Shown here: one piece after another, positions 6,969-32,883 of the stretch
Numbering within the stretch: position 1 is the stretch's first letter
Layout of the letters: every line of letters begins with the position of its first letter
IMG/VR virus record: IMGVR_UViG_3300042868_005134
Coordinates: 124,001 to 188,000 of that record
Length of the DNA: 64,000 bases
Strand: one strand, 5' to 3'
Position numbers and translations under genes: made by a program
Notes under the pieces: generated by a model
Databases searched by the model: none
The model's input: the letters and a program-made list of their open reading frames with translations, nothing else
What the model was told of the DNA's origin: nothing

Positions 6969-8354
6969 ATGCCACGTTTATCACTATACCGCCCTGAAAA
7001 GGGCAACGATTATAAATTTATAGATCGTTCTGCCAGCGAGATGTTTCAAGTGGGCGGAACGGACGTATATTTACACAAGTACCTAGGACCTGCAAATCCC
7101 AGCGATGCCAATGCCACCGCTGATCAACCTCAATACGATGCTGTGAAAGAAACAAACATTCAAGATTTGTTATTTCTTGAAAACCGTGACAGAAAATATG
7201 ATCCTAGCATATACAGATTACGCGGCGTATACAATGTTCAAGATTTAGATTTTAATTTAAGTCAGTTTGGATTGTTTTTAGACAACGATACAATTTACAT
7301 GACCATGCACATAAACGATTTTATTCGTTCAGTGGGCAGGAAACCCTTGAGTGGTGATGTTGTTGAATTACCGCATATTAAAGATGAATTTGCGCTCAAC
7401 GACATTGATGTCAGCTTGCCTAGATATTTTGTTATCAGTGATGTGGGCCGTGCCGCAGAGGGATTTAGCCCCACATGGTATCCGCACTTATATAGATTAA
7501 AACTTACAAAAATTGTTGACAGTCAACAATATAAAGAAATATTTGATCAAAAGGTCGTTGACCCTATTACAGGCGAAGAGACAAATACCACACTACGCGA
7601 TATTCTAAGTACACACAATAAAGAATTACAAATAAACGATGCCTTAATTGCTCAAGCAGAATCTGATGCTCCTAAGAGTGGCTACGAAACCCAGCAGTTT
7701 TATACACTAGCAGTCGATGCTTCTGGTAGGGCAGCATTACAAGGTGTGGACGATTCTTCTGCCCCTCCAGATGCGTCAACTATGACCATGGACGCAAGTC
7801 GTGTGGCCAAACGTCCTCAACGTAATGGTTATAGCGGTTACTTGACAGGCGACGGTATTGCGCCTAACGGGGTAGATTTTGGACATGGCATACAATTTCC
7901 AAATGGAGCTTTGGACGGTGACTTCTTTTTACGTACTGATTTCTTGCCTAACAGATTGTATAGATTTGACAGTACACGATGGATTAAATTTGAAGACAAT
8001 GTGAGAACTACACTAAGTAACACTGACACTAGAAATACGCTTAAAGGTACATTTATTAATAATAGTAATAAAACAGGTGTGGATATTGTTGCCAATGATT
8101 TTGTTACGCCCGTTGCTGACACTACAACGTTGTTGACTACAATAACTTATACTGCTGGCATGTATGCCACTGCCAGTATAGGAGATGGCATCTTCCCAAC
8201 AGTGACAGTTACTTCGGGTCTTGCTGGCAAAGCCTTGTTGACATTTAGTGAGACAGCGCCTGCCAATAAACAAATTGCTTGGAAATTGTATAGCAGCGCA
8301 CAAGAACAACGAATAGCAGTTAGTAAAGCGTTGAAACCCAAGGCAGATTTATAA
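6969..8354 (+). CDS. gp14: Neck protein (gp14-like) with C-terminal extension
   Basis: Start moved to the ATG at 6969 (MPRLSLYRPEKGNDY), since the ORF-track start at 6912 overlaps gp13. 'FNLSQFGLFLDND..YMTMHIND...KPLSGDVVELP' and synteny with gp13/gp15 support the call. Confidence 0.7.
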   Translation: MPRLSLYRPEKGNDYKFIDRSASEMFQVGGTDVYLHKYLGPANPSDANATADQPQYDAVKETNIQDLLFLENRDRKYDPSIYRLRGVYNVQDLDFNLSQFGLFLDNDTIYMTMHINDFIRSVGRKPLSGDVVELPHIKDEFALNDIDVSLPRYFVISDVGRAAEGFSPTWYPHLYRLKLTKIVDSQQYKEIFDQKVVDPITGEETNTTLRDILSTHNKELQINDALIAQAESDAPKSGYETQQFYTLAVDASGRAALQGVDDSSAPPDASTMTMDASRVAKRPQRNGYSGYLTGDGIAPNGVDFGHGIQFPNGALDGDFFLRTDFLPNRLYRFDSTRWIKFEDNVRTTLSNTDTRNTLKGTFINNSNKTGVDIVANDFVTPVADTTTLLTTITYTAGMYATASIGDGIFPTVTVTSGLAGKALLTFSETAPANKQIAWKLYSSAQEQRIAVSKALKPKADL

Positions 8355-9955
8355 TGCAATATTTTTATGACGGTCAAGTACGTCGCTACCTATTACAGAT
8401 TATTAGGTTACTAAGCAACTTTGTGGTCAAATACGGTGACGGCAGTCTTGTACGTGTGCCTGTAATGTATGGCGATGCCGATAGACAAGCGGCCAATATT
8501 ATTAAACAAAACAGTGAAAATACCATACTGGCTGCGCCACGTATAGCAGTATATATTACTGAACTAGAATTAGACATGAGCAGAATCAGTGATTCTAGTT
8601 TTATTAGTAAGGTACATGTGCGTGAACGAGCAGTAAATGAACTTACCGGCGAGTATACTTCTAGTCAAGGCAACAACTATACTGTTGAACGACTAATGCC
8701 AACGCCATTCAAACTGACAGTTAAGGCAGACATTTGGTCAAGCAGTAACGATCAAAAGTTACAAATACTTGAACAAATTTTAATGTTGTTTAATCCCAGT
8801 TTAGAAATACAAACCACTGACAACTATGTGGACTGGACCAGTTTAAGTGTGGTAGATTTGACACAAGTGGTTTACAGCGGCAGAAGCATACCAGTGGGCA
8901 CTGCCACTGAAATAGACATAGCAACACTGACTCTTCAGACTCCTATATGGATCAGTCCACCTGCTAAAATTAAACGACTTGGCGTCACTACCAGTGTTAT
9001 CACTAATATTTTAAGCTCATTGAATAATTCCAACGGAGATTACGTGGAAGGATTGGGCAGTGACAATAACATTTCAGGATTGACTAATCCGCCTACAGAT
9101 CCATTGTTTGGTCAAACCACAACCATAGGTAATTTTGACATAGAAGTTGTAAATGGGCAAATTAAACTTATCAGTAACGAAGGAACTTACCTAGCATGGA
9201 GCATGTTGATACAACAACACCCTAATGTTTATCATCCTAGCCTAACAAAAATTTATCTTAGACAGCCCGATGGCAGTTATGTAGTAGGTTACATTGCGAT
9301 TAGTTCCTTAGATGACACCATCATGGTAGTCGACTGGGATTCAGACACCTATCCCGGCAATACATTGATTTCATCAAGTTATAGAACAAGCACTGGTACA
9401 TTTGATGCCATTATAGATCCACAGCAAACAGGCCCTGTAAATCTAGTAGTGGGAACTCGCTACTTAATCCTTGAAAATATCGGCGGCGGCCTTAGAGATA
9501 CTTTTGAAGCTGTTAACAGTGTCAAACGCATCAACACCAACACCTTACACAGAAAAGTCAATGATCATAAGGTATGGGTCAATGGTGTTGAAGTGGGTTC
9601 GGGTAGTGCGAGAATTCCTGACAATATTGATACTGGTAATTACTATATTGTACTAGATGCCATGGCGCCCAGCGGTAGTGAAATTGTCTACGAATTGATC
9701 ATGAATGAAGACGGGCCCGATGCTTGGAAAAACACCGACGGTAGCGACACTGTGGCAGCAGCCAATGACATCATAGAGTGGACTGGCACAGACTGGGTGG
9801 TGGTATTCAGTGCCCAGGAAAACATCAACAATTTGGTTTACTTAACAAACATTTACCCTGGCAAACCTGATGTACAATACAAATGGAATGGTGTTGGCTG
9901 GAGCAAGAGTTTTGAAGGTGTGTATCGCAAAGAGGATTGGCGTCTTGAACTCTAA
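8354..9955 (+). CDS. gp15: Tail terminator / sheath stabiliser (gp15-like) with long C-terminal extension
   Basis: N-terminus 'YFYDGQVRRYL...LSNF......RVPVMYG' matches the gp15 pattern; TAATG overlap with gp14. Confidence 0.85.
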   Translation: MQYFYDGQVRRYLLQIIRLLSNFVVKYGDGSLVRVPVMYGDADRQAANIIKQNSENTILAAPRIAVYITELELDMSRISDSSFISKVHVRERAVNELTGEYTSSQGNNYTVERLMPTPFKLTVKADIWSSSNDQKLQILEQILMLFNPSLEIQTTDNYVDWTSLSVVDLTQVVYSGRSIPVGTATEIDIATLTLQTPIWISPPAKIKRLGVTTSVITNILSSLNNSNGDYVEGLGSDNNISGLTNPPTDPLFGQTTTIGNFDIEVVNGQIKLISNEGTYLAWSMLIQQHPNVYHPSLTKIYLRQPDGSYVVGYIAISSLDDTIMVVDWDSDTYPGNTLISSSYRTSTGTFDAIIDPQQTGPVNLVVGTRYLILENIGGGLRDTFEAVNSVKRINTNTLHRKVNDHKVWVNGVEVGSGSARIPDNIDTGNYYIVLDAMAPSGSEIVYELIMNEDGPDAWKNTDGSDTVAAANDIIEWTGTDWVVVFSAQENINNLVYLTNIYPGKPDVQYKWNGVGWSKSFEGVYRKEDWRLEL

Positions 9956-10385
9956 GGAACGTATTGTATGTAGTGGTGCGCTGTTTTACGCAAAAAACAC
10001 CAAACGATTTTTGCTGTTACAAAAAGCCACTGGCAAACATCAAGGCACATGGAGTCTCGTGGGTGGTACTGCTGAAGATCAAGAAACACCATGGCAAGGA
10101 CTTCAACGTGAAATTACTGAAGAAATAGGTAGCATACCTAGCATACTTAAAACTGTGCCTATTGAAACTTTTGTAAGCAACGACACAGTTTTTAATTTTC
10201 ACACTTATCTATGTGTGATAGGAGATGAATTTGTTCCTGTACTTAGCATGGAACACAGTGGGTGGGCATGGACCACTATTGATCATGCTCCTAGACCGTT
10301 ACATCAAGGATTACGTAACAGTCTTAGTAGTCGTATAGTCCGAACAAAATTACAAACTATATTTGATATCATTGACTTAATTTAA
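9945..10385 (+). CDS. NUDIX hydrolase
   Basis: Exact Nudix box G-x5-E-x7-REITEEIG. The probable start is TTG at 9945, with SD GAGGA at 9932-9936, overlapping the gp15 stop. Confidence 0.9.
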   Translation: MNSKERIVCSGALFYAKNTKRFLLLQKATGKHQGTWSLVGGTAEDQETPWQGLQREITEEIGSIPSILKTVPIETFVSNDTVFNFHTYLCVIGDEFVPVLSMEHSGWAWTTIDHAPRPLHQGLRNSLSSRIVRTKLQTIFDIIDLI

Positions 10386-10402
10386 CTGTCATCGCAAAAT
10401 CA

Positions 10403-11008
10403 TTAAGCATATGTTGCATTTAATGTAAACCATAATGTTGAACTAAGTGCAATATATTCTAATCCTGAACTTGCCGCTAAAGTAACACCAGTATTTGTTC
10501 CAGCATTATTAAGTTGGCCTCCATATGATGGATATACTATTATGTCAACTGCTAGATTATTTCGAACAACAATACGTTCGCCGCCCACGGCTAAAGGTAA
10601 TAGTATTCCAGAGCCGGCGCCGCCTGCAGTGACCAAGTTTATTTGACGTGTTAGTAGTGTAGCGCCGGCTTGTGTTGTTCCAGCTGAAGTTACTGCTACA
10701 TTATTACCAAACGCAACAGATCCTGAGTATTGTGCTAGACGAATCAAACCAGTGTCTAATACTTCAATGCTGGGTATGCCCGACACGTCATTTACACTGA
10801 AAATAGTGCCGCTTAAACTATTGGTAATACTGAATAGTTGGCCCGCACTCCCTTCAAAGCTCAATGTGCCGTTGCTGGTGGCATAGGCTTTTAATGTAAT
10901 ATTTTGAGCTGCCAAGCTGGCGTCGGCGCCGCTGAACACTATCTGTGGATCAGCCGTGGAAGAGCTAATGTTTGGGGTTATTACAATATTTTTATCTGAA
11001 TGTGCCAT
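10403..11008 (-). CDS. Tail fibre-associated structural protein
   Basis: 201 aa; 'LSFEGSAGQLFSITNSLSGTIFSVNDVSGIPSIEV' is a fibre-type module; late promoter upstream. Confidence 0.55.
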   Translation of the reverse strand: MAHSDKNIVITPNISSSTADPQIVFSGADASLAAQNITLKAYATSNGTLSFEGSAGQLFSITNSLSGTIFSVNDVSGIPSIEVLDTGLIRLAQYSGSVAFGNNVAVTSAGTTQAGATLLTRQINLVTAGGAGSGILLPLAVGGERIVVRNNLAVDIIVYPSYGGQLNNAGTNTGVTLAASSGLEYIALSSTLWFTLNATYA

Positions 11009-11023
11009 GTGTTATCTCTCTTG

Positions 11024-11030
11024 TATTTAT
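11024..11030 (-). promoter_or_regulatory. Late promoter (ATAAATA) overlapping upstream stop codon
   Basis: AATAAATA spans the TAA of the 11030-12247 gene. Confidence 0.6.
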
Positions 11031-12247
11031 TAGATTCCGTAACGACTGCGGAGTGCGTTAAAATTCTGCTGTACTTCCGCGGCTGATAATGCTCGGTTGT
11101 ATATTTTTGTTGATCCTATATTTCCAGAAAATGCAAAACTACTCAAATCACTTCTAATTCTACCTTGATCTATACTACTTACTCCAGTTCCACTAACTTG
11201 ATAAGTTCCTGCGATTATAGGAGGAGTTCCTAAGTCAACACCATTTTTATATACTTTCCAGGCAGTACCGGTTGATGCAGAAACAACAATGTTGACCCAA
11301 GTGTTTATGGATAATATATTATTATGTTGTATATAATTCCCTGGAGCTAAAGATATTTCCAAATTGGATGCTGATTTTATAAGCATTTCATATTTTTCAG
11401 TTACATTAGAACCCAATAATGCTGCATATGTTTTTGTACTATTAACATTAAACCATATATCTACACTAATAGAATTTTCGACAATACCACTAGAAGATAT
11501 AGATAGGAAATTATTACTACCATTGAAACTAAACGTACCATTACTAGCATACGTTAAACTATTTGCCGTGATTGTACTATTATTTGTAAGATCAAGTATT
11601 GCTTGTGTATTTGATCTGCTAGTGTCTGTATATGGTGTAGGAAATGTACCAAACTCTACCTGAGCACCACCTACTAGGATAAACCCTGCAAAAGAACCAT
11701 CGGTAATCCCGTAGCGTGCCGGATAGGCAATAATAAAGTTTACGTTTCCTGAAGCTGTTCCTTGTAGTCCCTGACGTTGCCATGAACCTTTTTGCGACAT
11801 ATCATATTCTGTTACATATCCTCCAGATAGTGCAGCAACAGACGCTCCTTCAATTGAAGAAAACATTCCATTAATATTACAATTAACGCTCAAGAAGGTA
11901 TATGCAGACATTGCATAACTTTGACCGGCGGTCATCGGTGCTGTTTTAAGTATATAAGCATAAGAGTTGCCAGACCACGATGCTGATAAGGCTCCAGACG
12001 TATACTTGCGAACTTGTCCTAAGTAAGTGCCTGCTGGTCCAGGTACTCCTGGATCAGTATATGTACTGCTAATTGTCCAACTAATACCATTCCAAAAATG
12101 CAGAGTTTGTGTTGGCCAAGTATAATATCCATCTAACGGGTGTAAATTTGTAGTTGGTGCGCCTCGCCAAGACTTCTGCGTATTGGACATGTCTGTGTAT
12201 AACACTAGACCATTAGTGACTACTGAGGGAGAATGATTAAGACTCAT
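11030..12247 (-). CDS. LamG / concanavalin-A-like domain virion protein with inserted passenger domain
   Basis: N-terminal 'GLVLYTD' and C-terminal 'KIYNRALSAAEVQQNFNA.RSRYG' LamG signature; paralogue of 18284-19510. Confidence 0.8.
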   Translation of the reverse strand: MSLNHSPSVVTNGLVLYTDMSNTQKSWRGAPTTNLHPLDGYYTWPTQTLHFWNGISWTISSTYTDPGVPGPAGTYLGQVRKYTSGALSASWSGNSYAYILKTAPMTAGQSYAMSAYTFLSVNCNINGMFSSIEGASVAALSGGYVTEYDMSQKGSWQRQGLQGTASGNVNFIIAYPARYGITDGSFAGFILVGGAQVEFGTFPTPYTDTSRSNTQAILDLTNNSTITANSLTYASNGTFSFNGSNNFLSISSSGIVENSISVDIWFNVNSTKTYAALLGSNVTEKYEMLIKSASNLEISLAPGNYIQHNNILSINTWVNIVVSASTGTAWKVYKNGVDLGTPPIIAGTYQVSGTGVSSIDQGRIRSDLSSFAFSGNIGSTKIYNRALSAAEVQQNFNALRSRYGI

Positions 12248-12984
12248 AGTCCAAACCTACCACGTATCGCGTTAAAATTTTTTTGAATTTCTTGAGTCGA
12301 TAACTCTCTGTTGTATATTCTAATAACTGATCGTCTTCCATAATGCTTCCACCCATATAGCGCACCAAATTGGATGCCGCCACCGTCATATACTGCTTTG
12401 CCAGCAGTATTAGGAGTTGATCCTACACCTTGATACACTCCGTTGATGTATAATGAAACAGTATTACTCATTCTGTTCCATATCATAGTTCTAAGTTTCC
12501 AGTAGTTAAGGTTGCTATAAGGTGCGTTTAATGATATTGTAGGTTGGTCGCTGTACCCACTTGCTGGATTGTTTGATTGTCCAAATACAAACTGAGTGTT
12601 TCCTACTCCGTGATTCCAGTCAAAACCCACACTGCCTGCGCTGTACGCTTGACCCGATGCCACTGTGCCAGCATCCGCTTCTGGATAGTTTACAGAATAT
12701 GTGTATACTGATTCTTCAATAGTCCATGCACCGTTGGTAGATGTTAATACACTACTTAAACTTGTTGAGTCAGCCACAGACACTATAAAAAAATTACTAA
12801 CGTTGCCACTATTTTGTAAATAGCCTGCGCTGACAAATTCACCACTGCTGATTGTTCCGTGATTGCCGTTTCCACTTATGTCATACCAGGTAGATCCTGT
12901 TCCAGGATAACTCTTAACATTGGCAGCATCGTAGTGAAGAACTAAGCCTGTTAACGTGGTAGAAGTATTATAATTTACGCTCAT
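12244..12984 (-). CDS. LamG / concanavalin-A-like domain protein
   Basis: 'GLVLHYDAANVKSYPGTGSTWYDISGNGNHG' and 'RIYNRELSTQEIQKNFNA'. Confidence 0.8.
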   Translation of the reverse strand: MSVNYNTSTTLTGLVLHYDAANVKSYPGTGSTWYDISGNGNHGTISSGEFVSAGYLQNSGNVSNFFIVSVADSTSLSSVLTSTNGAWTIEESVYTYSVNYPEADAGTVASGQAYSAGSVGFDWNHGVGNTQFVFGQSNNPASGYSDQPTISLNAPYSNLNYWKLRTMIWNRMSNTVSLYINGVYQGVGSTPNTAGKAVYDGGGIQFGALYGWKHYGRRSVIRIYNRELSTQEIQKNFNAIRGRFGL

Positions 12985-12998
12985 AATCTATAGTTTGT

Positions 12999-15900
12999 TT
13001 ACACGTATCCCAGGCCATTCCACGACCTACAGCTTACTCTAACATCTTTGAATATTCCAAATGTAGGATCGGTATTATATAAACTACAATCAACATATAC
13101 AGTATTATTTGTTCCATAGCTAGCCTGGTATAATAATTTAGATCCGTTGTAGTGTCTTATAAATCCATCAGTGTCATATACTATATAGAATTTCTGATTT
13201 TCATCCCATGTTGTGCCATGCGCGATTCCGGCGCCATTATTATATGTGTGGTAGTTATTCATGGTATACGGATAAGCACTATGATCAATAGAACTATAAT
13301 TAGCATCAGCTGTTGGATCTGTATTCCAACCTATCATGGCATATGATGCACCATTGTCGCCACCACCAGCAGCGGCTCGTTTACTAAACTCTATGGTACA
13401 AGGAGCACTGAATGCCTGTGTACTGTACGCTTGGCCGTTCCAACTATTGTTGTCTGCGTTTTTGGTAAAAGTCACAGTGTCGGTGCCATTATTCGACAAG
13501 GACATATTGGCGCTAAATGAATATGTAATAGTTTGATAACCAAGAAAACGTTCTTTAACGGCATTAAAGTTTTGCTGTACTTCTGCTGCTGTCAGTGCTC
13601 GACTATACAGAGAAGTGTGCGCCACTGAGCCGTTTAACCAATAATTATCGTTTAATGTTCCAATAGTGAACGGTAAAGTGGCGGCAACACCGATACCGCC
13701 TGTGTTAGAGTGTACAGCAACTCCGTTCTTATAAATTACACGAGAGCCGTCTGAGTTCAAAACAAGTCCTAAGTTGACCCAAGTATTCACAGTCACTGCA
13801 TTTCCAATATTGCCGCCAGTTGCGGCACCTGCATAATAATAAATTCCTCCACCATTTTCTATTCCAATATATGTATAGGCATTACTCTCTTGAGTACCCA
13901 TTAACTGATAACCGCTTGAGTGTGATAACGAATTAAATTTCACCCAGACAAAGAAACTTCTAGCTCCTGCGTCTACTTTGTGTGTAAATGTAATTTTGTC
14001 ATTGACACCATCAAACACAATACTTTTAATATTTTCAGTTGTATTATTGGCTCCATTGGTCAATATGCCGTGATTGTTATTACCACTTATATCAGTCCAC
14101 TGTGGGCCATCATTAAAATTTGAGTTTGGTGTAAATGTTCCACCACTTAAAAATGTATGTACAGTACTAAGTGTTCTAGTTTCTGTACCAACGGAGTAGG
14201 AAATTGTTGTTACGATGCCACCAGTGGCCCGCTGCACGCCTGGATAACGAACAATAACTACACCACTGCCGCCATCTTTAGCATGTGGTAAAGAATTATT
14301 TCCTGATCCACCACCACCTCCTCCACCAGTATTAGCAACTCCTGCAGTGGTACCATTGGCACTGCCAGTACCGTCAGCACCCCTGCCGCCGCCGCCAAAA
14401 TATCCAGTTGCTGACCCAATACTGTTAGTTACAGTAAAAGGCCCGTTGGTATAGACGCCACCGCCGCCACCACCGGCAAACCAACCTGGTGGAGATCCAC
14501 CTACACTGGCAAATTGTGGATAATATCGTCCGATGCCGCCGTTACTTGCAGTTGACGGACCGCCCCCAGTTGCTGTTCCGCCTGCGCCACCCCCGCCTGA
14601 ACCTTCGTGTGGAGCTGAATGATTGAAATCTTCAGCGATAGTTGGTCCGCCTGGCCCTCTGCTGCCGCCAGGAAAACCGTAGCCAGTGCCGCCACCGCTG
14701 TTTGTTTGTGTGGCTAGGCCGCCGCGAGACGCACCTGGATTTGAAACTCCAAAATAGTAGTCGCCCGCGCCGCCGCCGCTGCCGCCATTTTTATACACGC
14801 TGTCCGTGTAGAAGCTTTCATTGCCACCACCACCGCCTTGTGCTATAATATCGCTGAATGAGCTACTGCCACCTTGAAATCCGTGAGAATTATTTGTCGT
14901 GCCGTAGTTGCCTGTAGTTGACCCACCATAATACCTACCGCCCTGGCCTCCAGCACCCACAGTTACACTTATTCCAACTCCATTCTGAACATATTTATTA
15001 GGATGATATACCAAACCTCCGCCGCCGCCACCACCTGCAGCGCCATGACTACCACCTCCACCTCCACCTCCACCCACTACTAGCACTTCCACACCTGGAT
15101 TATTACCAAATGTAAAATAATCACTAGCAGTAAATGTGTGAATAGTATCATTGCCCGAAGTGGTTATTATTCCACCGGTGGCTTGTGGTGCTCCACGATA
15201 GCGAATAATAACTACGCCCGACCCACCAGCGCCGCCAGACTTTGAAGGGGAATAAGAGCCACCGCCGCCTCCGCCGCCAGTATTAGCAAGCCCTGCTGCG
15301 CCATCAGCACTAAAAAATGCTCCGCCGCCTCCACCCAATCCACCTATACCTTGTCTAGTTGGAGATGATGGAGAGTATGTTCCGCCAGCGCCGCCGCCGC
15401 CATAGTATGTTTGCGTTCCAACTGTGAATGTACCGCTTGTTGTGAACGTATGTACAGTGTCACCGTTAACTGAAGTTATAGTGCCTCCTGTTGCTCTTGC
15501 AACACCAGGATAACGAATAATAACTATACCACTACCGCCTTCACCACCCTTGTTATTACTATTATAATGAGATCCACCACCTCCGCCACCGCCGGTGGAT
15601 GCGCCTGCATTGCCGCCTGGTTGATTTGCGCCAGCAATGCCATCGATTGCTGGATTTATTCCTGTTGTGTCTCCAAAACCGCCGGGCCCTTCATAACTTG
15701 ATCCGCCACCACCGCCACCTGCGCCGCCATGCCCTCCTAAACCTGAACTTGGTGGATGTGTTGCTCCACCACCTCCTCCACCAAAATAAAATGGACTTAT
15801 CTGTGGATATTGACGGCCGTTGCCGCCGGTGGGTCGATTTGGTCCGCTTGCTCCGCGTTGACTGGCACCACCTCCACCTCCTGAATAATGGCTGTTGTCG

Positions 15901-17873
15901 CCGGACGCAGGATTTCCAGAATTTCCTCCAGAAAATCCTTGACCGGGTGTTCCATTGTCGACAATTCGACTACCACCGTGAGTATAACCTGAACATCCAC
16001 CGCCCGAAGCGCCAGTACCACCTATGCCACTGTTTGGAAGATATCCATAATATGAACTAGCGCCAAATCCACCGCCAATGGCAGTTATTCCAAAAATACT
16101 ACTGGTGCCGCCGTTGGTTGCTGAAATTGTAAATTGATGACCTCCTGGTTGTGGGCCTGCGCCGTCAGTTCTATAAGTACCGCCACCTGCTGGTGCGCCA
16201 TATCCGCCTGCGCCCACAGTCACTGTATAAGCAGTTCCGGGAATAACACTGATGCTGGGATTATAGAGCACTCCTCCGCCGCCGCCACCACCACCCATGT
16301 CCATTCCACCACCACCACCGCCTCCAACTACCAATGTGCTCACTGTGGTCAGTGTTCCACTAATACTAGTCGCTAGTCCAATTCCACCATTGCCACCACC
16401 ATCGGTGGCACCTGCCGATCCTGCGCCTCCAGCGCCACCGCCACCACCAGAATGATAGTATCCTGATTCTATTGCGGCTCCACCGGCATATCCTTGTCCA
16501 GGTGTGCCTGGCGCTACAGATTGTCCTTCACCTGTGCCGCCGCCTGATCCACCATTTGTTGGCCGGCCGCTGGTTGCTGTTCCGTCATATGTATTAGTAT
16601 TATTGCCGCCAGCACCTCCGGCGATGGCTGTGATACTAACAATTCCTGATCCTCCAATAGAAGAATTTCCAGCATTACTAGTATTGTCACCGTTTGAAGT
16701 GCGGCCGCTGCCGCCTTGTCCCACAGCTATATAATATGTTCTATCACGAAACATATTGTATGCACTATTATAAACTACGCCACCGCCACCACCACCTCCA
16801 CCCATTTCAAAACCGCCACCTCCACCACCTGCTACTACCAGTGCTTCTACTGTGGTAGGTCCAGATGATTTTATGTTGTTAGCGTCTAGAGACAATACTA
16901 AGTTACTGTTGCTGATAACAGTCCCGTTGGTAACAGTGGCAATTCCTTGACTGGTTAAAAAACGAACAATAACTATGCCGCTGCCGCCTTCGCCGCCTTT
17001 ATTTGTTACGTTGTAATGAGATCCACCACCTCCGCCACCGCCGGTATTTGCGCCAGCATTTCCGCCGGACGTTCCGTTTGCTGCGGGCACCGCAGAATTG
17101 GATCCATTATTGTATCCGGTGCCGCCGAGTCCTGCGATTCCGCTGTATGCAGTGCCGCCGCCGCCGCCGCCAAGTCCACCGTTGCTACCATCACCTAACG
17201 AATAGTTAGAGCCTCCACCACCACCAGCCCAATAATAGCCTGTTCCTAAAATACTGTTATAAACTCCGACACCCCCATTTGCCCTATTTGGCCCGTCGGC
17301 ACCTGCACCACCTGCACCACCGCCACCGCCTGAATAATAACTGCCGCCGCCGCCATTGCCGCCTTTATTTCCTTGACCAGCAGTTCCAGATGGCCCTATA
17401 GTAGTTGCTCCTGCTGTGTATCCTGAATTGCCGCCTCCTGATCCTCCTGCTCCACCTATGCCATAGTTTGGAAGATATCCATAATAGGAACTGCCGCCAT
17501 AGCCACCGCCAATGGCAGTCAATGATCCAAACACCGAATTGCCGCCGTTGGTTGCTGAAATTGTAAATTGATGACCTCCTGGTTGTGGGCCTGCGCCGTC
17601 AGTTCTATAAGTACCGCCACCTGCTGGTGCGCCATATCCGCCTGCGCCCACAGTCGCTACGTAAGTTGTGCCGCTTGTTACGGTAAAACTTGAATTACTA
17701 ATGACTCCGCCACCTCCGCCGCCACCACCCATGTCCATTCCACCACCACCGCCTCCAGCAACCACTAGGACTTCAACAGTTCCACTAAATTGAGGGATAA
17801 ATGTGCCCGATGTTTTAAACACCCAAACAGTGTTGCTGGTTCCAACCCGGTTAGTTCCTGAAAATGAAGCCAT
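12999..17873 (-). CDS. Glycine-rich repeat / LamG fibre or adhesin protein (1624 aa)
   Basis: Four 'V(E/S)xLVVxGGGGGG...GGSG(I/V)V(I/V)(V/I)R' modules plus a split LamG domain ending 'LYSRALTAAEVQQNFNA'. Confidence 0.8.
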   Translation of the reverse strand: MASFSGTNRVGTSNTVWVFKTSGTFIPQFSGTVEVLVVAGGGGGGMDMGGGGGGGGVISNSSFTVTSGTTYVATVGAGGYGAPAGGGTYRTDGAGPQPGGHQFTISATNGGNSVFGSLTAIGGGYGGSSYYGYLPNYGIGGAGGSGGGNSGYTAGATTIGPSGTAGQGNKGGNGGGGSYYSGGGGGAGGAGADGPNRANGGVGVYNSILGTGYYWAGGGGGSNYSLGDGSNGGLGGGGGGTAYSGIAGLGGTGYNNGSNSAVPAANGTSGGNAGANTGGGGGGGSHYNVTNKGGEGGSGIVIVRFLTSQGIATVTNGTVISNSNLVLSLDANNIKSSGPTTVEALVVAGGGGGGFEMGGGGGGGGVVYNSAYNMFRDRTYYIAVGQGGSGRTSNGDNTSNAGNSSIGGSGIVSITAIAGGAGGNNTNTYDGTATSGRPTNGGSGGGTGEGQSVAPGTPGQGYAGGAAIESGYYHSGGGGGAGGAGSAGATDGGGNGGIGLATSISGTLTTVSTLVVGGGGGGGMDMGGGGGGGGVLYNPSISVIPGTAYTVTVGAGGYGAPAGGGTYRTDGAGPQPGGHQFTISATNGGTSSIFGITAIGGGFGASSYYGYLPNSGIGGTGASGGGCSGYTHGGSRIVDNGTPGQGFSGGNSGNPASGDNSHYSGGGGGASQRGASGPNRPTGGNGRQYPQISPFYFGGGGGGATHPPSSGLGGHGGAGGGGGGSSYEGPGGFGDTTGINPAIDGIAGANQPGGNAGASTGGGGGGGSHYNSNNKGGEGGSGIVIIRYPGVARATGGTITSVNGDTVHTFTTSGTFTVGTQTYYGGGGAGGTYSPSSPTRQGIGGLGGGGGAFFSADGAAGLANTGGGGGGGSYSPSKSGGAGGSGVVIIRYRGAPQATGGIITTSGNDTIHTFTASDYFTFGNNPGVEVLVVGGGGGGGGSHGAAGGGGGGGLVYHPNKYVQNGVGISVTVGAGGQGGRYYGGSTTGNYGTTNNSHGFQGGSSSFSDIIAQGGGGGNESFYTDSVYKNGGSGGGAGDYYFGVSNPGASRGGLATQTNSGGGTGYGFPGGSRGPGGPTIAEDFNHSAPHEGSGGGGAGGTATGGGPSTASNGGIGRYYPQFASVGGSPPGWFAGGGGGGVYTNGPFTVTNSIGSATGYFGGGGRGADGTGSANGTTAGVANTGGGGGGGSGNNSLPHAKDGGSGVVIVRYPGVQRATGGIVTTISYSVGTETRTLSTVHTFLSGGTFTPNSNFNDGPQWTDISGNNNHGILTNGANNTTENIKSIVFDGVNDKITFTHKVDAGARSFFVWVKFNSLSHSSGYQLMGTQESNAYTYIGIENGGGIYYYAGAATGGNIGNAVTVNTWVNLGLVLNSDGSRVIYKNGVAVHSNTGGIGVAATLPFTIGTLNDNYWLNGSVAHTSLYSRALTAAEVQQNFNAVKERFLGYQTITYSFSANMSLSNNGTDTVTFTKNADNNSWNGQAYSTQAFSAPCTIEFSKRAAAGGGDNGASYAMIGWNTDPTADANYSSIDHSAYPYTMNNYHTYNNGAGIAHGTTWDENQKFYIVYDTDGFIRHYNGSKLLYQASYGTNNTVYVDCSLYNTDPTFGIFKDVRVSCRSWNGLGYV
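16106..16221. repeat. 116-bp exact direct repeat, copy 2 (copy 1 at 17540-17655)
   Basis: Base-by-base comparison shows identity over 116 bp at an offset of 1434 bp. Confidence 0.9.
17540..17655. repeat. 116-bp exact direct repeat, copy 1
   Basis: Identical to 16106-16221; encodes TVGAGGYGAPAGGGTYRTDGAGPQPGGHQFTISATNGG. Confidence 0.9.
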
Positions 17874-18205
17874 TATGATATGTCCGGTAATACAGAAGGT
17901 ATTTCATTCCAAGATTTTGTTTTTTCATGCCATATGTAATGTTTGTTATCTTGTGGCATATCAACAGGAGCTGTCCAAACTGTGCCAACTAGAGTCCAAC
18001 TATCAAACGGTCTTGGGGCAATAAATGCAGCTAAATCTACATTGTAAGTATATCCAATACCTACATGATGATGGGCCACACCGTTGTTATCCAGAACTTG
18101 TATAAAGTTTACTGGATCGCCTAAGGCTCCCGATTCGATAAATTCTTGTTCAGCAACAATGATATTTACTACTTGATTGTTTTCTATTTTTGCGTAATGT
18201 GCCAT
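17873..18205 (-). CDS. Small Trp-rich protein preceding the glycine-rich fibre (possible fibre assembly factor)
   Basis: The ATG at 18205 (MAHYAKIENNQVVNIIVA) has SD GGAG at 18218-18215; TAATG coupling to the 1624-aa gene. Confidence 0.65.
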   Translation of the reverse strand: MAHYAKIENNQVVNIIVAEQEFIESGALGDPVNFIQVLDNNGVAHHHVGIGYTYNVDLAAFIAPRPFDSWTLVGTVWTAPVDMPQDNKHYIWHEKTKSWNEIPSVLPDIS

Positions 18206-18247
18206 TATTCTATACTCCATTTGTTTAAAGGGCATGTTCTAAACTTA

Positions 18248-18254
18248 TATTTAA
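18248..18254 (-). promoter_or_regulatory. Possible late promoter (TTAAATA)
   Basis: TAAATA core in the 48-bp intergenic gap; AT-rich context lowers confidence. Confidence 0.4.
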
Positions 18255-18283
18255 TCATATAATGATCCTACTATATGCTACAC

Positions 18284-19510
18284 TCATAATCCGTACTTTC
18301 CTTTTACTGCGTTAAAATTCTGTTTGACTTCTGCGGCTGATAATGGACTGTTATATATTTTAACTGAGGGGACCTGTCCAATAAACCAGCGTTCCCCGGA
18401 ATCTTGAAAACCTCTTCCAATATTGACATTATTAAAATTTCCAGGCCAGGTATACGAAGCAGCAGCACTCTGTACAACTGATCCATTGTAAAATGATGTA
18501 AAGGTATTTCCATTTTTTGTTAGGCAGGCACAGTGATATACCGACGAATTTAGTCCAGACGACACAACAGTCCAAAATTCGTAGTTACCTGACAGGTCTC
18601 CAGTAATCCAAACTAAATTTCCTGAACTATTTTGTTCTAATCTAGGTCCGACATTACTGTATGATCCAGGGTATCTAAGCCAATTACAATCTATAGGATT
18701 CCTATAATTAGCTACACTATCAGATTTAAACCATATCTCTACAGTAAAATTTGATATACCTGTAATTGCGTTAACTGAAGCGTAGTTACTACCGTTGAAA
18801 CTAAACGTACTATTACTAGCATAAGTCAAACTCGCGGCTGTAATTGTACTATTATTTGTTAAATCTAATAGGGCTTGCGTGGTAGATCGTGTGTTATTCG
18901 TGTACGGTGAAACAAATGTTGAGTCGTTGCGATCTTCTTTAAATGGTGCAGCCCAATATACGGTAATTGGCACATTGAGAGTAGCGCCTGCTGGATTTAT
19001 TGCCCAATATTTTCCATCGCTGCCGCCGCCTGCACTGTAGAATATAACATGTGCTCTGTACCAACCGTCGCCCATGTCATCGTAGTTTCCTGTACTTTGC
19101 CAGCCGCCGATATTGGAATAGTGTGTGTAAATAGGAGTTGATGAATTTAATCCGGATCTGCCCACAGCTGGTTTAAAAAATATACTATGTCCTGTGTATC
19201 TTGCTGCTGCACCGCCGCCTGCTCCTGTTACAACACCAATACCTGGATTGCCAGCATTGGTCAAATAGCTGACTCCAGTGGCTGTAACAGGAGTGAGTAC
19301 TTGTTTATAAACAGGTTGGCCTCTATACGATTCTGTTGTCACAGTTAAAGATGAAGTTACATCCGATGGTGTATTTAAATAGGTGCCTATGCCTATGCCA
19401 GCAGAAATATTTGTAGTGGGCGCACCTTGGAAAGACTTCTGAGTATTTGACATATCATAGTAAAATACCAATCCATCTGTGACTACTTTAGGTGAATGAA
19501 ATAATGACAT
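18284..19510 (-). CDS. LamG domain virion protein with inserted passenger domain
   Basis: Paralogue of 11030-12247, sharing 'MSL.HSP.VVT.GLV.Y.DMSNTQKS..GAPTTN' and 'RS.TQA.LDLTNNSTITA.SLTYASN.TFSFNGSN'. Confidence 0.8.
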   Translation of the reverse strand: MSLFHSPKVVTDGLVFYYDMSNTQKSFQGAPTTNISAGIGIGTYLNTPSDVTSSLTVTTESYRGQPVYKQVLTPVTATGVSYLTNAGNPGIGVVTGAGGGAAARYTGHSIFFKPAVGRSGLNSSTPIYTHYSNIGGWQSTGNYDDMGDGWYRAHVIFYSAGGGSDGKYWAINPAGATLNVPITVYWAAPFKEDRNDSTFVSPYTNNTRSTTQALLDLTNNSTITAASLTYASNSTFSFNGSNYASVNAITGISNFTVEIWFKSDSVANYRNPIDCNWLRYPGSYSNVGPRLEQNSSGNLVWITGDLSGNYEFWTVVSSGLNSSVYHCACLTKNGNTFTSFYNGSVVQSAAASYTWPGNFNNVNIGRGFQDSGERWFIGQVPSVKIYNSPLSAAEVKQNFNAVKGKYGL

Positions 19511-20214
19511 TATGTTCCGTATCGTTTTCTATGTGATGTTTGGTATTGTTGAATAACTTGTGAAGCTGAGTGTGCGGCGTTGTAAACCTGCATGGCTCCA
19601 AAATCTCCTAGCCAATGTCCCCAGCCCCAAAAAATTCCAATACTGCCCATGTTGCCGCCACCAAGTGAACGAGGCGAAACTACATTCAATACATAATCTT
19701 GTACACCATTTATGTACATGACCATATTGGTACCACTGGTTCTAACAAACGCAAGATGTACCCAGGCGCCTGTATTGGCCGATGCTCCAGTGCTGGTATA
19801 ATAATTCCATTGACTGTCGTACTGAACGTAATATAGTTTTCCGTCATTTAATCCGTAACCTACATTAACAGGGCCGCCGCTCCAGTGTGAAAATAATGCT
19901 CGCTGACCAGTGGCTGTTGTGCGTACAGAAAAATATACAGTGCAGACAGTTGGTAATGTAAAATCGGTGTGAGCAATATAGTCATTCGATCCGTCAAATG
20001 ATAGATATTTGATATTGTTAACATTGTCGAATGTGGGGCCGTTAAGCAGCGTTCCTACCCTAGTACCTTGCAAATCATTTAGTGTGGTTCCTGAGTATGA
20101 CAGTGTTCTGTTGAGATCTACTGCAAAATCTAAATTTGCAGATATGAGACCGGCTCGTGAATTTTCCTTTGACGAATTTATCAAAGAGTCAGCAACTCCG
20201 TAGGTGGTTGACAT
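19510..20214 (-). CDS. LamG domain protein
   Basis: 'SFDGSNDYI', 'WVHLAFVR', 'MQVYNAAHSASQVIQQY'. Confidence 0.75.
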   Translation of the reverse strand: MSTTYGVADSLINSSKENSRAGLISANLDFAVDLNRTLSYSGTTLNDLQGTRVGTLLNGPTFDNVNNIKYLSFDGSNDYIAHTDFTLPTVCTVYFSVRTTATGQRALFSHWSGGPVNVGYGLNDGKLYYVQYDSQWNYYTSTGASANTGAWVHLAFVRTSGTNMVMYINGVQDYVLNVVSPRSLGGGNMGSIGIFWGWGHWLGDFGAMQVYNAAHSASQVIQQYQTSHRKRYGT

Positions 20215-23200
20215 TACTCAATCTCCACCACAAGTTTTTCAACGTCGACTCGCTCCCCATATACTGTGTAGAAACAATCAATCTTAGATGGAAACAACCC
20301 ACTATTTTCAACATGAACAACATTGTCTTTAATACATAGAACATACAAATTTTGATGTTTACCAATTGGTGTTAAGTTTACTGTGATGGAGTCAGGATCT
20401 ACAAGTTTGGTCCAGTATTCTGGAAGTTCAATCGTATTACCTTTTAATCTACCTCTTACATAAACACCGTTTTCAGGTCCTTCTAAACTACCATATCGTA
20501 ATTTCATTCCAGCTCTAGTTGGGTGATCAATTACAAAAGATTTAGTAGTTGCTGCGAATGAACCAACGACTTGAAGTGTGTACACTGGAGCACTAGTACC
20601 GACACCAACATTGCCGCCATCTCTGTTCAATAATAAACTTGCTGGAGATGAATTGCTATCATTGTTATATGCTCCGATAACACTACCATTGGTTGTGCTT
20701 CCACCTATCCTTAGTTGCTTTCCGCCACTAGTTCCAAACTGACAATGCCATACGTCCGCAGCAGTATTGACGCTAAGTTTATATCCTGGACTTGATGTGC
20801 CTACTCCAAAATATCCACTAGTATTAAATACGCCTACTTGTAAAGCATTAACCATGAATGATAATGGATAACTATTATATGTTCCAACGAATCCACCAGG
20901 TGTTACGCCACTAACAGCTTGCCATGCATCATGAGCATACATACCCATACTAACAGTGCCGGTCTTTACATGTATTCTAGCATTGCCGCTGCCGTGAACA
21001 TTCAATTGTCTGTCCCACCCATTGTAATTAGTAGGCGATTCACCAATAGATAATCCACCAAAGGTTTCGCCGATCATGTAACTATTGTGATAAGCAGTAA
21101 ATGTCCCGGCACTATTAACCTCAAAGCGAACTGTGTTGTTTGTTGCAAATTGTAATGCTCTGGCCGAATCTGTTCCCAAAACAGTTGCGTAGTTATAAGA
21201 TCCTGAAAATGTTGAGGCAACTGAACCTTGATTACCAAATATGGTGTTTCCAGCAGTGTTTTTTATAACAAACAAAGCGGCGTTTGCACCTGTTGTTGAC
21301 TCCATTCTCGTTAACACCGAGGCATTTTGAATGTCTAACGAATATCCATTAGCAACTGTGGTGGTGCCAATGCCAACTCCGCCAGTTGAGGTCGAAGTAC
21401 CAACTAGCACCATGGTAGGAACATCGCCCACATAACTTGCGCCCACTGTATAAAAATGCAACTCTCCCCTATTCCAATTAGGGTCGGTGCCGCTAGCGCC
21501 ACCGATGCCCGTCTTTTTGCCCATAATGGCAGCATACATCGAGTTGTAACTACCGGAGTTAGAAAGAGCTGAGAATGTTATTGCTGGAGAATAAGAATTA
21601 GTTGTATTATTTTCATTATGAAGTGTAAGACCAATACTTTGGCCTCTAGTAGTTCCAGAGCTGCTTCTTGTGATGGCTATAACTGCATCTTTACCATCCG
21701 CAGCCCAATTAGTGCCATTAGATGTTAATAGTCGATTATTTCTTGAAGTATAGTGAGTTGAATCTGAATCCACGTTAGTAAAACTAAAAAACTCATCGTT
21801 GGGCGCAAGGAATCTGCCTCCGCCATTGAAGCTTGACATTGTAGTTGTAGTTGAGCCTCGGCCAGTTACTGTGGCCAGAGTATCGGCTTCAGCAGTTAGT
21901 GGAGTAATGTTTCCTTCATGCCACACTCTATGAGCAACTGCGCCCATGCTCCAACCACCAACTTTTAAGTCAGTACCATCTAATCCTAGTTTTATAGCAT
22001 ATGATCCAGGTCTATGGAAAGTCATGTAAGCAGGGTTAGTACTGCCAGTTCCATATATTTCCAATCCTGGAGTACCTTGAGAACCATCAGCAAATGTTCC
22101 AGAACTGCCCCTTGTAATAAACCCGCGGTTTGTCACGGTGGCCAGTGTATCGGCTTCTGCTGTAAGATACGTGCTAGTGTCTGCACTAAGTACGCCGCCA
22201 ACGCCAAGTTTAACGAATCCAGATGTTCCAAGGTCTGGAAGTTTGACAGAGCCGTTTGCTGTTAGACCACCTGAGAAAGTTGATAGAGTACTGGTAGTGG
22301 CGCCTCGGCTAGTAACAGTTGACAGTGTATCAGCTTCAGCAAATGATGTTAAAATAGTAGCACCGTTAATAGTAGCACTTGAAGCACTGGTAAGTTCAGG
22401 TACGCTATCTGGAGTAAAGGCAGCAATATTGGTGCCAGCGCCAGGGCTGCTAATGATAAACATTGTGTCCATTGGCGGTGGATTTGTCCCTGTTTGATTC
22501 CAATTGGTTGTTAGCCGAACATCGCACTGTGCGTAAGCGGTAGTTTCGACGTAGATGGGTATCCATCGTTGATCACCTGTGCCTGTCACTGATGCGCCCA
22601 CAGTTACTCTAAAATTGTTTGGGCCAATGCCTATATATTCAACTAGTCTAAGTGTTGATGTTGGACCGCTGCCATAAGATACAGTGTATTTTTTCTTAAG
22701 ACCAGAACCGTAATATTTTTCCAACAATTCAATTTCAATAACACCAATGCTATTCCAGTCGTTGAAATCCACAGCAACTCTTGCTATTTCAAATTGTTTT
22801 GCCTGGTTACCGCTTTGTGGTATTGCCCAATAAAACGTTTTAACTGCCGACACAGGACCTTGATATGCTGTAGAATCGTATCCATCTAACAGTTCAGAGT
22901 CTGCAGCTTTTGCAGTTTTACCTAGATATCTTAAATCTAGATCTACAGATGCTAACCCAGTTACGTGTCCATAAGTATCAAGTGTTACATCTTGAATTAC
23001 TGTTCCGTTAGAATTATCAACACTTGCTTGACTGCTAGTATCGGCATGATTAACTGTGACCGCACCTGTGGCACCAGATATCGTGATTGCATTACCTGCA
23101 ACTAAACTAGTAACACCTGTATTGGTAATTACCGGAGTTGATCCTTCACCTGTGGCTGTTCCCACGGTAATGCCAGTGCCTGCTGTCATTGAAGCAACAT

Positions 23201-25598: not shown

Positions 25599-25625
25599 TT
25601 GGTTTCACTCTCCACCAGTATGTTG

Positions 25626-25632
25626 TATTTAT
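25626..25632 (-). promoter_or_regulatory. Late promoter (ATAAATA) overlapping upstream stop codon
   Basis: AATAAATA spans the TAA at 25634-25632; SD GGAGAG lies downstream. Confidence 0.6.
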
Positions 25633-32810: not shown

Positions 32811-32831
32811 TCTGCTATTCCTAAAAAGGTT

Positions 32832-32883
32832 GGGTCAGGTCTTTCGACGCCCTGCGGGTCAGGTCTAGTTTCCTAGACGCCCT
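32832..32883 (-). ncRNA. Tandem structured RNA motif in the intergenic leader of the 2392-aa gene (candidate cis-regulatory element)
   Basis: Two units of AGGG-C-GUC(UAG)-GAAA-(CUA)GAC-CUGA-CCC at 32883-32856 and 32853-32832. Confidence 0.55.

Follow-up and report, generated by a model that had tools for sequence, protein, structure and literature searches.

The region described here lies in a window of 64,000 nucleotides (nt), the whole stretch of DNA that was analysed, which corresponds to positions 124001-188000 of a 383-kb IMG/VR phage record rated complete. The record belongs to a freshwater jumbo myophage: it encodes a T4-type major capsid protein that is approximately 70% identical to the capsid proteins of jumbo phages such as PA5oct and Phosso, and the portal protein and tail sheath are encoded in the window. 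Directly downstream of an open reading frame (ORF) for a tail fibre of 1794 amino acid residues (aa), and on the same strand as the fibres, there are five ORFs (P0001 to P0005) whose products contain a LamG domain and are predicted to use one loop of this domain as the insertion site for different passenger domains. The gene order is P0005 (234 aa), P0004 (408 aa), a 120-aa ORF, P0003 (1624 aa), P0002 (246 aa), P0001 (405 aa) and a 201-aa ORF, the cluster being followed by the tail and neck genes gp15 and gp13. No alternative genetic code is required to read the ORFs. The five genes are the following:

11030..12247, minus strand: P0001, 405 aa, with insert A between LamG strands 1 and 2; Laminin_G_3 is matched at aa 243-393 only
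12244..12984, minus strand: P0002, 246 aa, LamG without an insert
12999..17873, minus strand: P0003, 1624 aa, consisting of a glycine-rich module, strand 1, four glycine-rich modules, the rest of LamG and a C-terminal domain
18284..19510, minus strand: P0004, 408 aa, with insert B in the loop that is used by insert A in P0001; Laminin_G_3 is matched at aa 240-396
19510..20214, minus strand: P0005, 234 aa, LamG without an insert

The Laminin_G_3 profile (PF13385) matches all five ORFs. The hmmscan scores are 50.5 bits for P0001, 54.8 bits for P0004 and 53.8 bits for P0005, and a genome search gives 54.1 bits for P0003. P0002 is borderline, with 26.5 bits in hmmscan and 29.6 bits in the genome search, the Pfam gathering cut-off being 27.6 bits (the cut-offs for CBM_4_9 and Gly_rich_2, the other two families considered here, are 25.9 and 24.3 bits). 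The distance between strand 1 and strand 2 differs widely among these proteins. In P0002, strand 1 (GLVLHYDAANVKS) is followed 8 residues on by the motif WYDISGNGNHG, and P0005 has a degenerate version of the pair, LISANLDFAVD ... LNDLQGTRVG. The gap extends over 174 aa in P0001, 171 aa in P0004 and 923 aa in P0003, where strand 1 (NLVLSLDANNIKS) is located at aa 324-336 and the motif WTDISGNNNHG at aa 1259. A preliminary description of this DNA held that the start of LamG runs straight into strand 2 in the two short proteins, that the 405-aa and 408-aa proteins carry unrelated inserts of approximately 170 aa, and that some 915 aa of glycine-rich modules separate the two motifs in the 1624-aa protein. 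The measured gaps agree with the last two statements, and the inserts A and B show no similarity by BLASTP (E 0.75); the first statement is accurate for P0002, and P0005 fits the quoted motif only loosely. Unmentioned in that description is a further glycine-rich module (aa 1-305) that precedes strand 1 in P0003. The LamG domain of this protein is distributed as follows:

16866..16919, minus strand: displaced strand 1 of P0003, aa 319-336
14103..16865, minus strand: glycine-rich passenger array in the loop between strands 1 and 2, aa 337-1257
13545..14102, minus strand: LamG strands from 2 to the last plus helix, aa 1258-1443, with the Laminin_G_3 match
12999..13544, minus strand: extra C-terminal domain, aa 1444-1624 and the stop codon

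The passengers in the loop appear to be of at least two kinds. Insert A and insert B occupy the following positions:

11624..12145, minus strand: insert A of P0001, aa 35-208, all-beta, tentatively assigned to a CBM4/9-like (BppA-like) family
18896..19408, minus strand: insert B of P0004, aa 35-205

Insert A by itself has no Pfam or PHROG match in a scan of the insert. A family of 71 inserts (125-185 aa) was therefore compiled from proteins that share the adaptor sequences described below, and the profile of this family matches, with E values from 1e-4 to 5e-2, carbohydrate-binding modules (CBMs) of the CBM4 and CBM22 families from xylanases and a laminarinase as well as BppA of the lactococcal phage Tuc2009 (5e7t_B); PDB 1gui is among the structures matched. 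The Pfam family CBM_4_9 (PF02018) matches 4 of the 71 members, among them the insert of the sibling protein P0020 with 27.9 bits. On the basis of the profile matches and the four CBM_4_9 members, insert A is predicted with moderate confidence to be a divergent CBM4/9- or BppA-like sandwich. Of the 374 homologues of insert B, nearly all are LamG proteins of about 400 aa. An hhalign comparison of insert B with the insert-A family aligns only the last strand and the linker, and for this reason homology of the two inserts is not claimed; language-model features of insert B point to a CBM_4_9 cluster at 0.94 with a low shared-feature count, which is a lead only. The passenger of P0003 is of the other kind: it matches Gly_rich_2 (PF21722) with 137 bits in six stretches (45-102 bits for each of three parts), and a PDB sequence search with the glycine-rich module reveals no solved homologue. 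Across the family, the size of the passenger varies from about 100 to about 900 aa. Thus, the earlier suggestion that the inserts bind carbohydrates is plausible for the insert-A family, with its weak CBM4/9 and BppA matches, and finds no counterpart for insert B, whose profile yields no match. The C-terminal domain of P0003 (approximately 180 aa) has no significant Pfam, PHROG or PDB match; it is found also at the end of a 550-aa metagenome protein (P0104), after the LamG domain of the latter, and thus appears to be a third kind of movable module.

The genomic context of these genes is that of a tail-fibre module:

20214-38292, minus strand: a run of three giant ORFs (1794, 2392 and 1802 aa) with matches to the tail-fibre PHROGs 5342, 9851 and 17885

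The LamG parts of the five proteins match PHROG 8510, “virion structural protein”. Together with the position in the tail-fibre block, the matches to this PHROG and to the cyanophage protein S-PM2 p176, the CBM family of insert A and the fibrinogen-C genes that replace LamG genes in relatives (see below) suggest that the proteins function as adhesins. An alternative with a different kind of arms race is that they are soluble or intracellular lectin-like proteins of the infected cell which, e.g., mask receptors or modify or bind envelope polymers, so that the diversity would have no relation to adsorption. The genes are small and free-standing, no attachment domain is recognised in their products, and contigs from a freshwater RNA library overlap neighbouring genes (where carry-over of DNA is possible), all of which is compatible with this alternative. 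However, the cluster is located inside a structural block, on the fibre strand, with fibre genes on one side and neck and tail genes on the other; PHROG 8510 and S-PM2 p176 are matched by the LamG parts; and the CBM family that is matched by insert A decorates the virions of lactococcal phages in the form of BppA (PMC7291167). A soluble lectin is accordingly an unlikely, if the least unlikely, alternative to an accessory adhesin.

The prediction that the LamG domain is interrupted by the passenger, i.e., that it is discontinuous and closes around the insert, comes from three sets of structural models. The AlphaFold2 (AF2) model of P0001, built from an alignment of 73 homologues, has a predicted local distance difference test score (pLDDT) of 85.9 and a predicted template modelling score (pTM) of 0.73. 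Along the chain, the model shows a first strand (aa 14-19), the all-beta insert (aa 47-199; strands with pLDDT of about 90-97), the LamG strands (aa 226-383) and a helix (aa 389-402); the first 6-10 residues of the protein are of low confidence. Contiguous lectin jelly rolls of about 200 aa (e.g., domain 4 of AbnA, 5hon_A) superimpose on this model with Z scores of 18.9-19.7 and a root-mean-square deviation (rmsd) of 2.4-3.0, and the approximately 190 aligned residues extend from residue 10-12 to near residue 400; over the whole set of lectin jelly-roll matches, the Z scores are 18-19.7 and residues 10-404 are spanned. A search of the ESM Atlas identifies a viral cluster of 247-aa LamG-only proteins, of which 208 residues align with residues 5-405 of P0001 (rmsd 2.2, template modelling (TM) score 0.76). 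Only 190 residues of P0001 follow the insert, so the N-terminus must supply some of the aligned positions. A 413-aa viral cluster from the same source matches the entire two-domain shape of the model (TM score 0.70).

The second model is that of P0077, a 546-aa metagenome relative with a single glycine-rich module in the loop between strands 1 and 2; overall, this module and the last one of P0003 share 54% identity, with long stretches that are nearly identical. The AF2 model of P0077 (pLDDT 75.6, pTM 0.79) matches jelly rolls with Z scores of 21-21.8 over residues 8-540. For P0003 itself, strand complementation was modelled by docking a chain with aa 306-342 to a chain with aa 1225-1445, the latter retaining an adjacent HTF-type strand that is a possible competitor for the position of strand 1. 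The ipSAE score is 0.62 in three runs, which share at least 66% of the contacts, with 0.00 for the best control; of 78 solved complexes, 51 attain the pass mark of this procedure, as do 2 of 108 mismatched pairs. In the docked arrangement, the last LamG strand (aa 1417-1425) is the antiparallel neighbour of aa 319-334, which are also in contact with strand 2 (aa 1258-1269). Thus, the pairing of the N-terminal and C-terminal strands that is characteristic of a jelly roll is present in the predictions (docking of P0003, and models with Z scores of 18-22), and all three place the N-terminal strand inside the sandwich, as the preliminary description had anticipated for an AlphaFold check. The single fixed loop that it proposed as the slot corresponds to the loop between LamG strands 1 and 2. 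Approximately 80 distinct Gly_rich_2+LamG proteins of about 500 aa follow the same plan: all begin with a strand of the form GLVLxLDA that continues directly into VEVLVVAGGGGGG, which is the first strand of the glycine-rich domain.

The same data bear on the possibility that these are linear three-part proteins, in which the 34 N-terminal residues are a virion-docking peptide, the insert is a middle domain and LamG is complete on its own. This reading draws on the low confidence of the first 6-10 residues in the P0001 model, on the conservation of the N-terminal sequence pattern in all classes and on the Pfam Laminin_G_3 model, which begins only past strands 1-2. Against it, insert-free relatives of 225 aa have strand 1 only 8-10 residues before strand 2; the LamG-only cluster aligns more residues (208) than the part after the insert can supply; and the strand of P0003 docks to the last LamG strand (0.62 versus 0.00) in spite of the competing HTF-type strand. 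A linear arrangement is therefore improbable, and a predicted nested strand could in any case coexist with a docking tag formed by residues 1-12.

The passenger and the central part of the LamG domain are bracketed by conserved pieces, which in P0001 are arranged as follows:

12146..12247, minus strand: N-adaptor, aa 1-34, with LamG strand 1 (aa 14-19) and the motif KSW-x-GAPTTN
11510..11623, minus strand: post-insert adaptor, aa 209-246 (SRSNTQAILDLTNN...TFSFNGS), LamG strands 2-3
11117..11509, minus strand: variable LamG core, aa 247-377, with no DNA match in relatives A and B (see below)
11030..11116, minus strand: C-terminal frame, i.e., the last strand, the helix at aa 389-402 (IYNRALSAAEVQQNFNA...) and the stop codon

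All three conserved pieces are direct repeats that are 75-85% identical in nucleotide sequence between P0001 and P0004. The N-adaptors of the two proteins share 79% of their residues (75% nt identity between window positions 12146-12236 and 19409-19499), and residues D19, S26, G29 and N34 are invariant in the 73 homologues. For the post-insert adaptor (38 aa), the identity is 82% at the protein level and 75% in nucleotides (11514-11647 versus 18786-18919). The C-terminal piece includes a 54-nt repeat that is present in four of the five genes (11054-11107, 12268-12321, 13560-13613 and 18308-18361) and encodes, in P0001 and P0004, the consensus IYNxxLSAAEVxQNFNA. In each adaptor, 14 codons differ synonymously only and 7 differ such that the residue is altered; this twofold excess of synonymous-only changes indicates that the pieces are maintained by selection on the protein, and not by recent copying or chance. 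The N-terminal pattern M-x-x-x-x-S/G-P-x-I/V-V-T-x-G is retained across all classes. Only a frame is constant, made up of strands 1-3 together with the last strand and the helix at the C-terminus. Candidate parts for holding the proteins on the virion are this helix and the first twelve or so residues, which are conserved. Insert-free relatives of the P0001 core (P0038, P0048 and P0070) have a 40-aa N-terminal extension (FRIDQITNQAGTAGPDIAG...) before strand 1, which may be an attachment tag that the genes in the window do not carry.

Comparison with four syntenic relatives, all of them metagenome contigs from separate assemblies (A, L045-L047; B, L048-L049; C, L052-L053; D, L054), reveals how the segments between the conserved pieces change. 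The backbone genes are 88-100% identical to those in the window, and the contents of the slots differ:

Slot after the fibre gene: LamG-234 in the window; a fibrinogen-C gene and a 71-aa gene in A; LamG-234 in B, C and D
Second slot: insert B in the window; insert A in A; insert A in B; insert B in C; insert B in D
Slot before the last LamG gene: LamG-246 in the window and in A; a fibrinogen-C-like gene in B; a 61-aa ORF and a fibrinogen-C-like gene in C
Last slot, window and A: insert A on core a1 in the window; a 280-aa insert C on core c in A
Last slot, B, C and D: insert B on another core in B; an insert of about 105 aa on core c in C; insert C on core a1 in D

Among the genes without a CBM-like insert, P0002 has a 93% identical counterpart in relative A, and the fibrinogen-C-like gene takes its place in B and C; P0003 is 89-90% identical in A, B and C; and P0005 is 88-93% identical in B, C and D and is replaced in A. 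In relative D, a 400-aa LamG gene follows the last-slot gene, and the slot before the last LamG gene is not comparable; the usual position of the 1624-aa gene (L054:9288-12729) is taken by a 186-aa ORF, a 54-aa ORF and two LamG genes of 509 and 400 aa. The replacement genes (L045:9073-9792, L048:9265-9999 and L052:16727-17461) encode proteins of 239-244 aa that match Fibrinogen_C (PF00147, E 4e-10 and 3e-6), a lectin-type fold that is unusual in phages, and they have no LamG N-terminal strand.

Within the LamG genes, cores and inserts are exchanged separately. In two cases, only the core differs. Window positions 12248-11508 (aa 1-246 of P0001) are 84-87% identical in nucleotides to the second-slot gene of A and B (also labelled the slot-2 gene), the identity of the proteins being 85-88% in the head and 23-24% in the core. 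Likewise, positions 19499-18792 (aa 1-239 of P0004) are 92% identical to the last-slot gene of B (also labelled the slot-6 gene), with protein identity of 94% in the head and 26% in the core, for which there is no DNA match. In other cases, only the insert differs: window positions 11617-11053 are 91% identical in nucleotides to relative D, where they follow the different, 280-aa insert, and A and C are 98% identical to each other from the post-insert adaptor onward and have different inserts. The crossovers coincide with the ends of the post-insert adaptor, at window position 11617 in the comparison with L054 and at 11508 in the comparisons with L045 and L048.

Metagenome proteins extend the range of combinations. 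Cores from 16 clusters are combined with insert A (at least 60% identical); for insert B (at least 58% identical), 108 proteins comprise 60 core clusters. The core of P0001 (at least 60% identical) occurs without an insert, with three kinds of glycine-rich inserts and with several CBM-like inserts; among proteins in which P0001-type cores are 75-96% identical, there are likewise variants with no insert, with Gly_rich_2 and with other CBM-like inserts. Many other viral contigs contain tandem LamG arrays in which empty, CBM-type and Gly-type genes are mixed. The relatives thus bear out the exchange of inserts between conserved flanks that had been proposed for this locus. They do not bear out the notion of a common LamG scaffold: the variability of the central core (aa 247-377 of P0001) equals or exceeds that of the insert, with core identities of 23-26% next to heads of 85-94% and with the 16 and 60 core clusters listed above, and the central half of LamG is the most changeable segment of all.

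With adaptors that are repeated within one genome and with relatives that are all metagenome contigs, the assemblers might have joined paralogous cassettes at the shared adaptors, in which case the swaps would be unreal; short Logan contigs do break at the repeat borders. In contigs mapped to window positions 10300-13100 from three lake DNA runs and one RNA run, all of which are short and of low depth, the loose ends cluster at 11054/11107, 11514/11617 and 12210, mostly through cross-mapping of P0004. However, the repeats are 75% identical over 91-134 nt, and their exact runs are far below assembly k-mers. The window genome contains none of the alternative cores and inserts, and rearrangement of the window therefore cannot produce them. 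Moreover, each arrangement was obtained more than once, from two or three samples or assemblers that are independent of one another (L045/L046/L047, L048/L049 and L052/L053), and the arrangement of the window itself is present at no less than 93% of the sampled words in 15 lake runs. On these grounds, assembly chimerism is rejected as a highly improbable source of the pattern. Hypermutation by a diversity-generating retroelement, the targets of which, according to one survey, reportedly can include Laminin_G_3-containing proteins, is rejected with near certainty: the 383-kb record has no reverse transcriptase (RVT_1) match (a template repeat was not searched for), and the differences are whole segments at 23-26% identity with sharp crossovers, not adenine-directed substitutions.

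In the mapping described above, contigs from the freshwater metatranscriptome run X24 are located at window positions 10546-11065 (the 201-aa ORF) and 12228-12972 (a relative approximately 90% identical to P0002); none lies on the insert or core of P0001, and DNA carry-over is possible.

All these observations appear to be best explained, with good though not full confidence, by a cassette locus in the tail-fibre module that encodes lectin-like accessory adhesins. In the proposed mechanism, the Laminin_G_3 jelly roll would serve as the base, and the loop between strands 1 and 2 as a permissive insertion site that is empty in P0002 and P0005 and holds a domain of about 170 aa in P0001 and P0004 and 923 aa of Gly_rich_2 sequence in P0003. 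The chain would exit LamG after strand 1, form the passenger, re-enter and finish the sandwich. The N-adaptor, the post-insert adaptor and the C-terminal motif would bracket two variable segments, the insert and the central core, and homologous recombination at these three conserved pieces could exchange each segment independently among both related and unrelated phages, the outcome being combinatorial pairs of two putative binding surfaces. In LamG and other concanavalin A-like folds, the termini are located at one end of the sandwich, and the ligand sites usually lie at the opposite rim or on the concave face. Since ligand sites are usually away from the termini, the variable loops of the core, and not the insert alone, would be in a position to bind; and since the LamG core is swapped as well, with only the frame kept, each protein would have two exchangeable surfaces. 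Exchange of cassettes probably changes what these phages adhere to. The data show the architecture of the sequences, the nesting in the predicted fold and the exchange of cassettes together with its crossovers; the location on the virion, the binding of host-surface glycans and the change of specificity upon exchange are what we infer from the context and the family matches described above.

Several points weigh against this interpretation. The location on the virion is deduced from the proximity to the tail-fibre genes and from a distant LamG homologue with the annotation of an S-PM2 virion protein, and no obvious virion-attachment domain is recognised in the proteins. Insert A has no Pfam match of its own, and the profile of its family reaches an E value of 1e-4 at best; the profile of insert B has no PDB match, its Pfam and PHROG scans are null, and no fold is assignable. 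The structures are predictions, for which the ends of the aligned residues and the secondary structure were inspected rather than the AF2 coordinates. The AF2 models cover P0001 and P0077, with P0003 represented by fragments and P0004 by homologous adaptors. The docking used fragments in trans, with an uncertain fold of the partner (pLDDT 48-49), and close relatives of the true partner can also pass this test. Finally, the tables that combine inserts with cores were compiled from hits chosen for their similarity to one segment, and they show which combinations exist, not their frequencies.

A bolder version of the cassette interpretation is that the LamG frame is a universal socket present in many unrelated freshwater phages, which mix and match the contents of two slots from a community-wide gene pool; in that case, the adaptors would double as structural junctions and recombination linkers. 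This extension is tentative, and we consider it somewhat doubtful. If correct, it would describe a natural two-slot combinatorial lectin display system, with passengers that range from CBMs of about 100 aa to polyglycine arrays of about 900 aa.

For uncultured freshwater and jumbo phages, the proteins that recognise the host have hardly been characterised. The present analysis yields a rule for reading them, namely, a LamG frame with one permissive loop, three linker motifs and two variable candidates for the determinants of specificity. The rule covers many metagenomic proteins, including 1492 homologues of P0001, 630 homologues of a glycine-rich relative and the 374 homologues of insert B. 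If the proteins do bind, they would provide a natural scaffold that tolerates passengers of about 100 to about 900 residues, which is relevant both to the evolution of nested domains and to the design of binders, and the inserts and cores could act as probes for the hosts of uncultured lake phages.

Two small ORFs accompany the LamG genes:

17873..18235, minus strand: P0006, 120 aa, phrog_7759, 96% identical in relatives
10403-11008: conserved 201-aa ORF with no family match

In relatives A, B and C, where the neighbouring genes are swapped, both are conserved at 96-100%, and their products could be assembly factors or attachment partners. The counterpart of the 201-aa ORF in relative D is 66% identical, and its N-terminus is fused to a longer protein. 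Relative A shares the 1794-aa fibre ORF at 92% identity. In relatives C and D, this ORF is replaced by a 1812-aa version of which the first half is only 67-72% identical in DNA. Further along the window, a NUDIX hydrolase ORF (9870-10385, plus strand) overlaps the end of a gp15-like ORF (8354-9955) by 86 nt; the NUDIX genes of the relatives are shorter (124-146 aa), so the annotated start may be too far upstream. The segment 14001-18000 has a GC content of 51%, compared to about 40% elsewhere, and a strongly negative GC skew; both follow from the GGN codons for glycine in the minus-strand gene P0003, and neither points to foreign DNA. A sixth Laminin_G_3 domain (72 bits) is encoded outside the window in the same genome, in an 1147-aa open frame (G000:C1:45181-45630).

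The DNA of the window is present almost verbatim in more than 15 lake-water metagenome runs. A megablast search of 50,697 GenBank phage records with the 9.2-kb region finds no match, and the only matches obtained with tblastn in these records are the C-terminal LamG parts of cyanophage proteins. The architecture is not described in the literature searched (LamG or Laminin_G_3 with phage, PF21722, and domain insertion), and similar proteins in UniProt and BFVD, from uncultured phages, are labelled only “Concanavalin A-like lectin/glucanases superfamily”. The solved lectin jelly rolls that are matched by the models, namely, domain 4 of AbnA, CBM40, the lectin domain of trans-sialidase and the N-terminal half of the binding domains of clostridial neurotoxin and NTNH, have the same fold (Z scores of 18-22, rmsd of 2.3-3.0 over about 190 residues, 11-20% identity), but none of them is interrupted between strands 1 and 2. 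The resemblance, including that to the neurotoxin and NTNH, is one of generic fold only, and no toxin gene is present. The nearest cultured homologues of the LamG core are virion proteins of T4-like cyanophages (e.g., S-PM2 p176, 1058 aa, PHROG 8510). These are annotated as virion proteins and are 31-40% identical over the last 100-195 aa, including the C-terminal motif; in proteins of the S-PM2 p176 type, however, LamG is the C-terminal domain of a long protein, and no nested CBM-like or Gly-rich insert with the adaptors described here is found in the 50,697 phage records.

Two phage systems are comparable in organisation. The gp38 adhesins of T-even phages are diversified by recombination in or near conserved motifs, which gives chimeras with new specificity (PMC3157838). 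As in the present locus, a small accessory adhesin is encoded in the tail-fibre locus, and a frame of conserved motifs, which in gp38 are rich in glycine, alternates with variable segments, hypervariable in gp38. The fold of gp38, a polyglycine sandwich, is a different one. The proteins described here show no sequence relationship to it: no gp38 family of PHROG or Pfam is matched, and their glycine-rich part belongs to Gly_rich_2. The variable segments of gp38 are short loops, whereas here whole domains of 100-900 aa and a half-domain of 130 aa are exchanged; and attachment to the fibre tip is demonstrated for gp38, whereas here it is proposed from gene context. In the second system, evolved Dit, the galectin domain of Dit carries BppA-type CBMs in its loops; the Dit of phage p2 has a long insertion directly after the first strand of this domain, and the fold of the inserted CBMs is that of BppA, which is similar to PDB 1GUI (PMC7291167). 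The likeness is that of a CBM beta-sandwich nested in a loop of a lectin-like sandwich in a phage adhesion device. Here, however, the outer domain is a free-standing Laminin_G_3 protein and not the galectin domain of the hexameric Dit hub; no Dit-related Pfam or PHROG match is detected, and the proteins begin directly with LamG strand 1. The present locus differs also in belonging to a lake-water jumbo myophage, in its arrays of paralogues with universal adaptors, in the alternative glycine-rich passenger and in the exchange of the scaffold core. Thus, the locus belongs to neither the evolved Dit nor the gp38 family; of the systems compared, evolved Dit is the nearest in design and gp38 the nearest in evolutionary logic.

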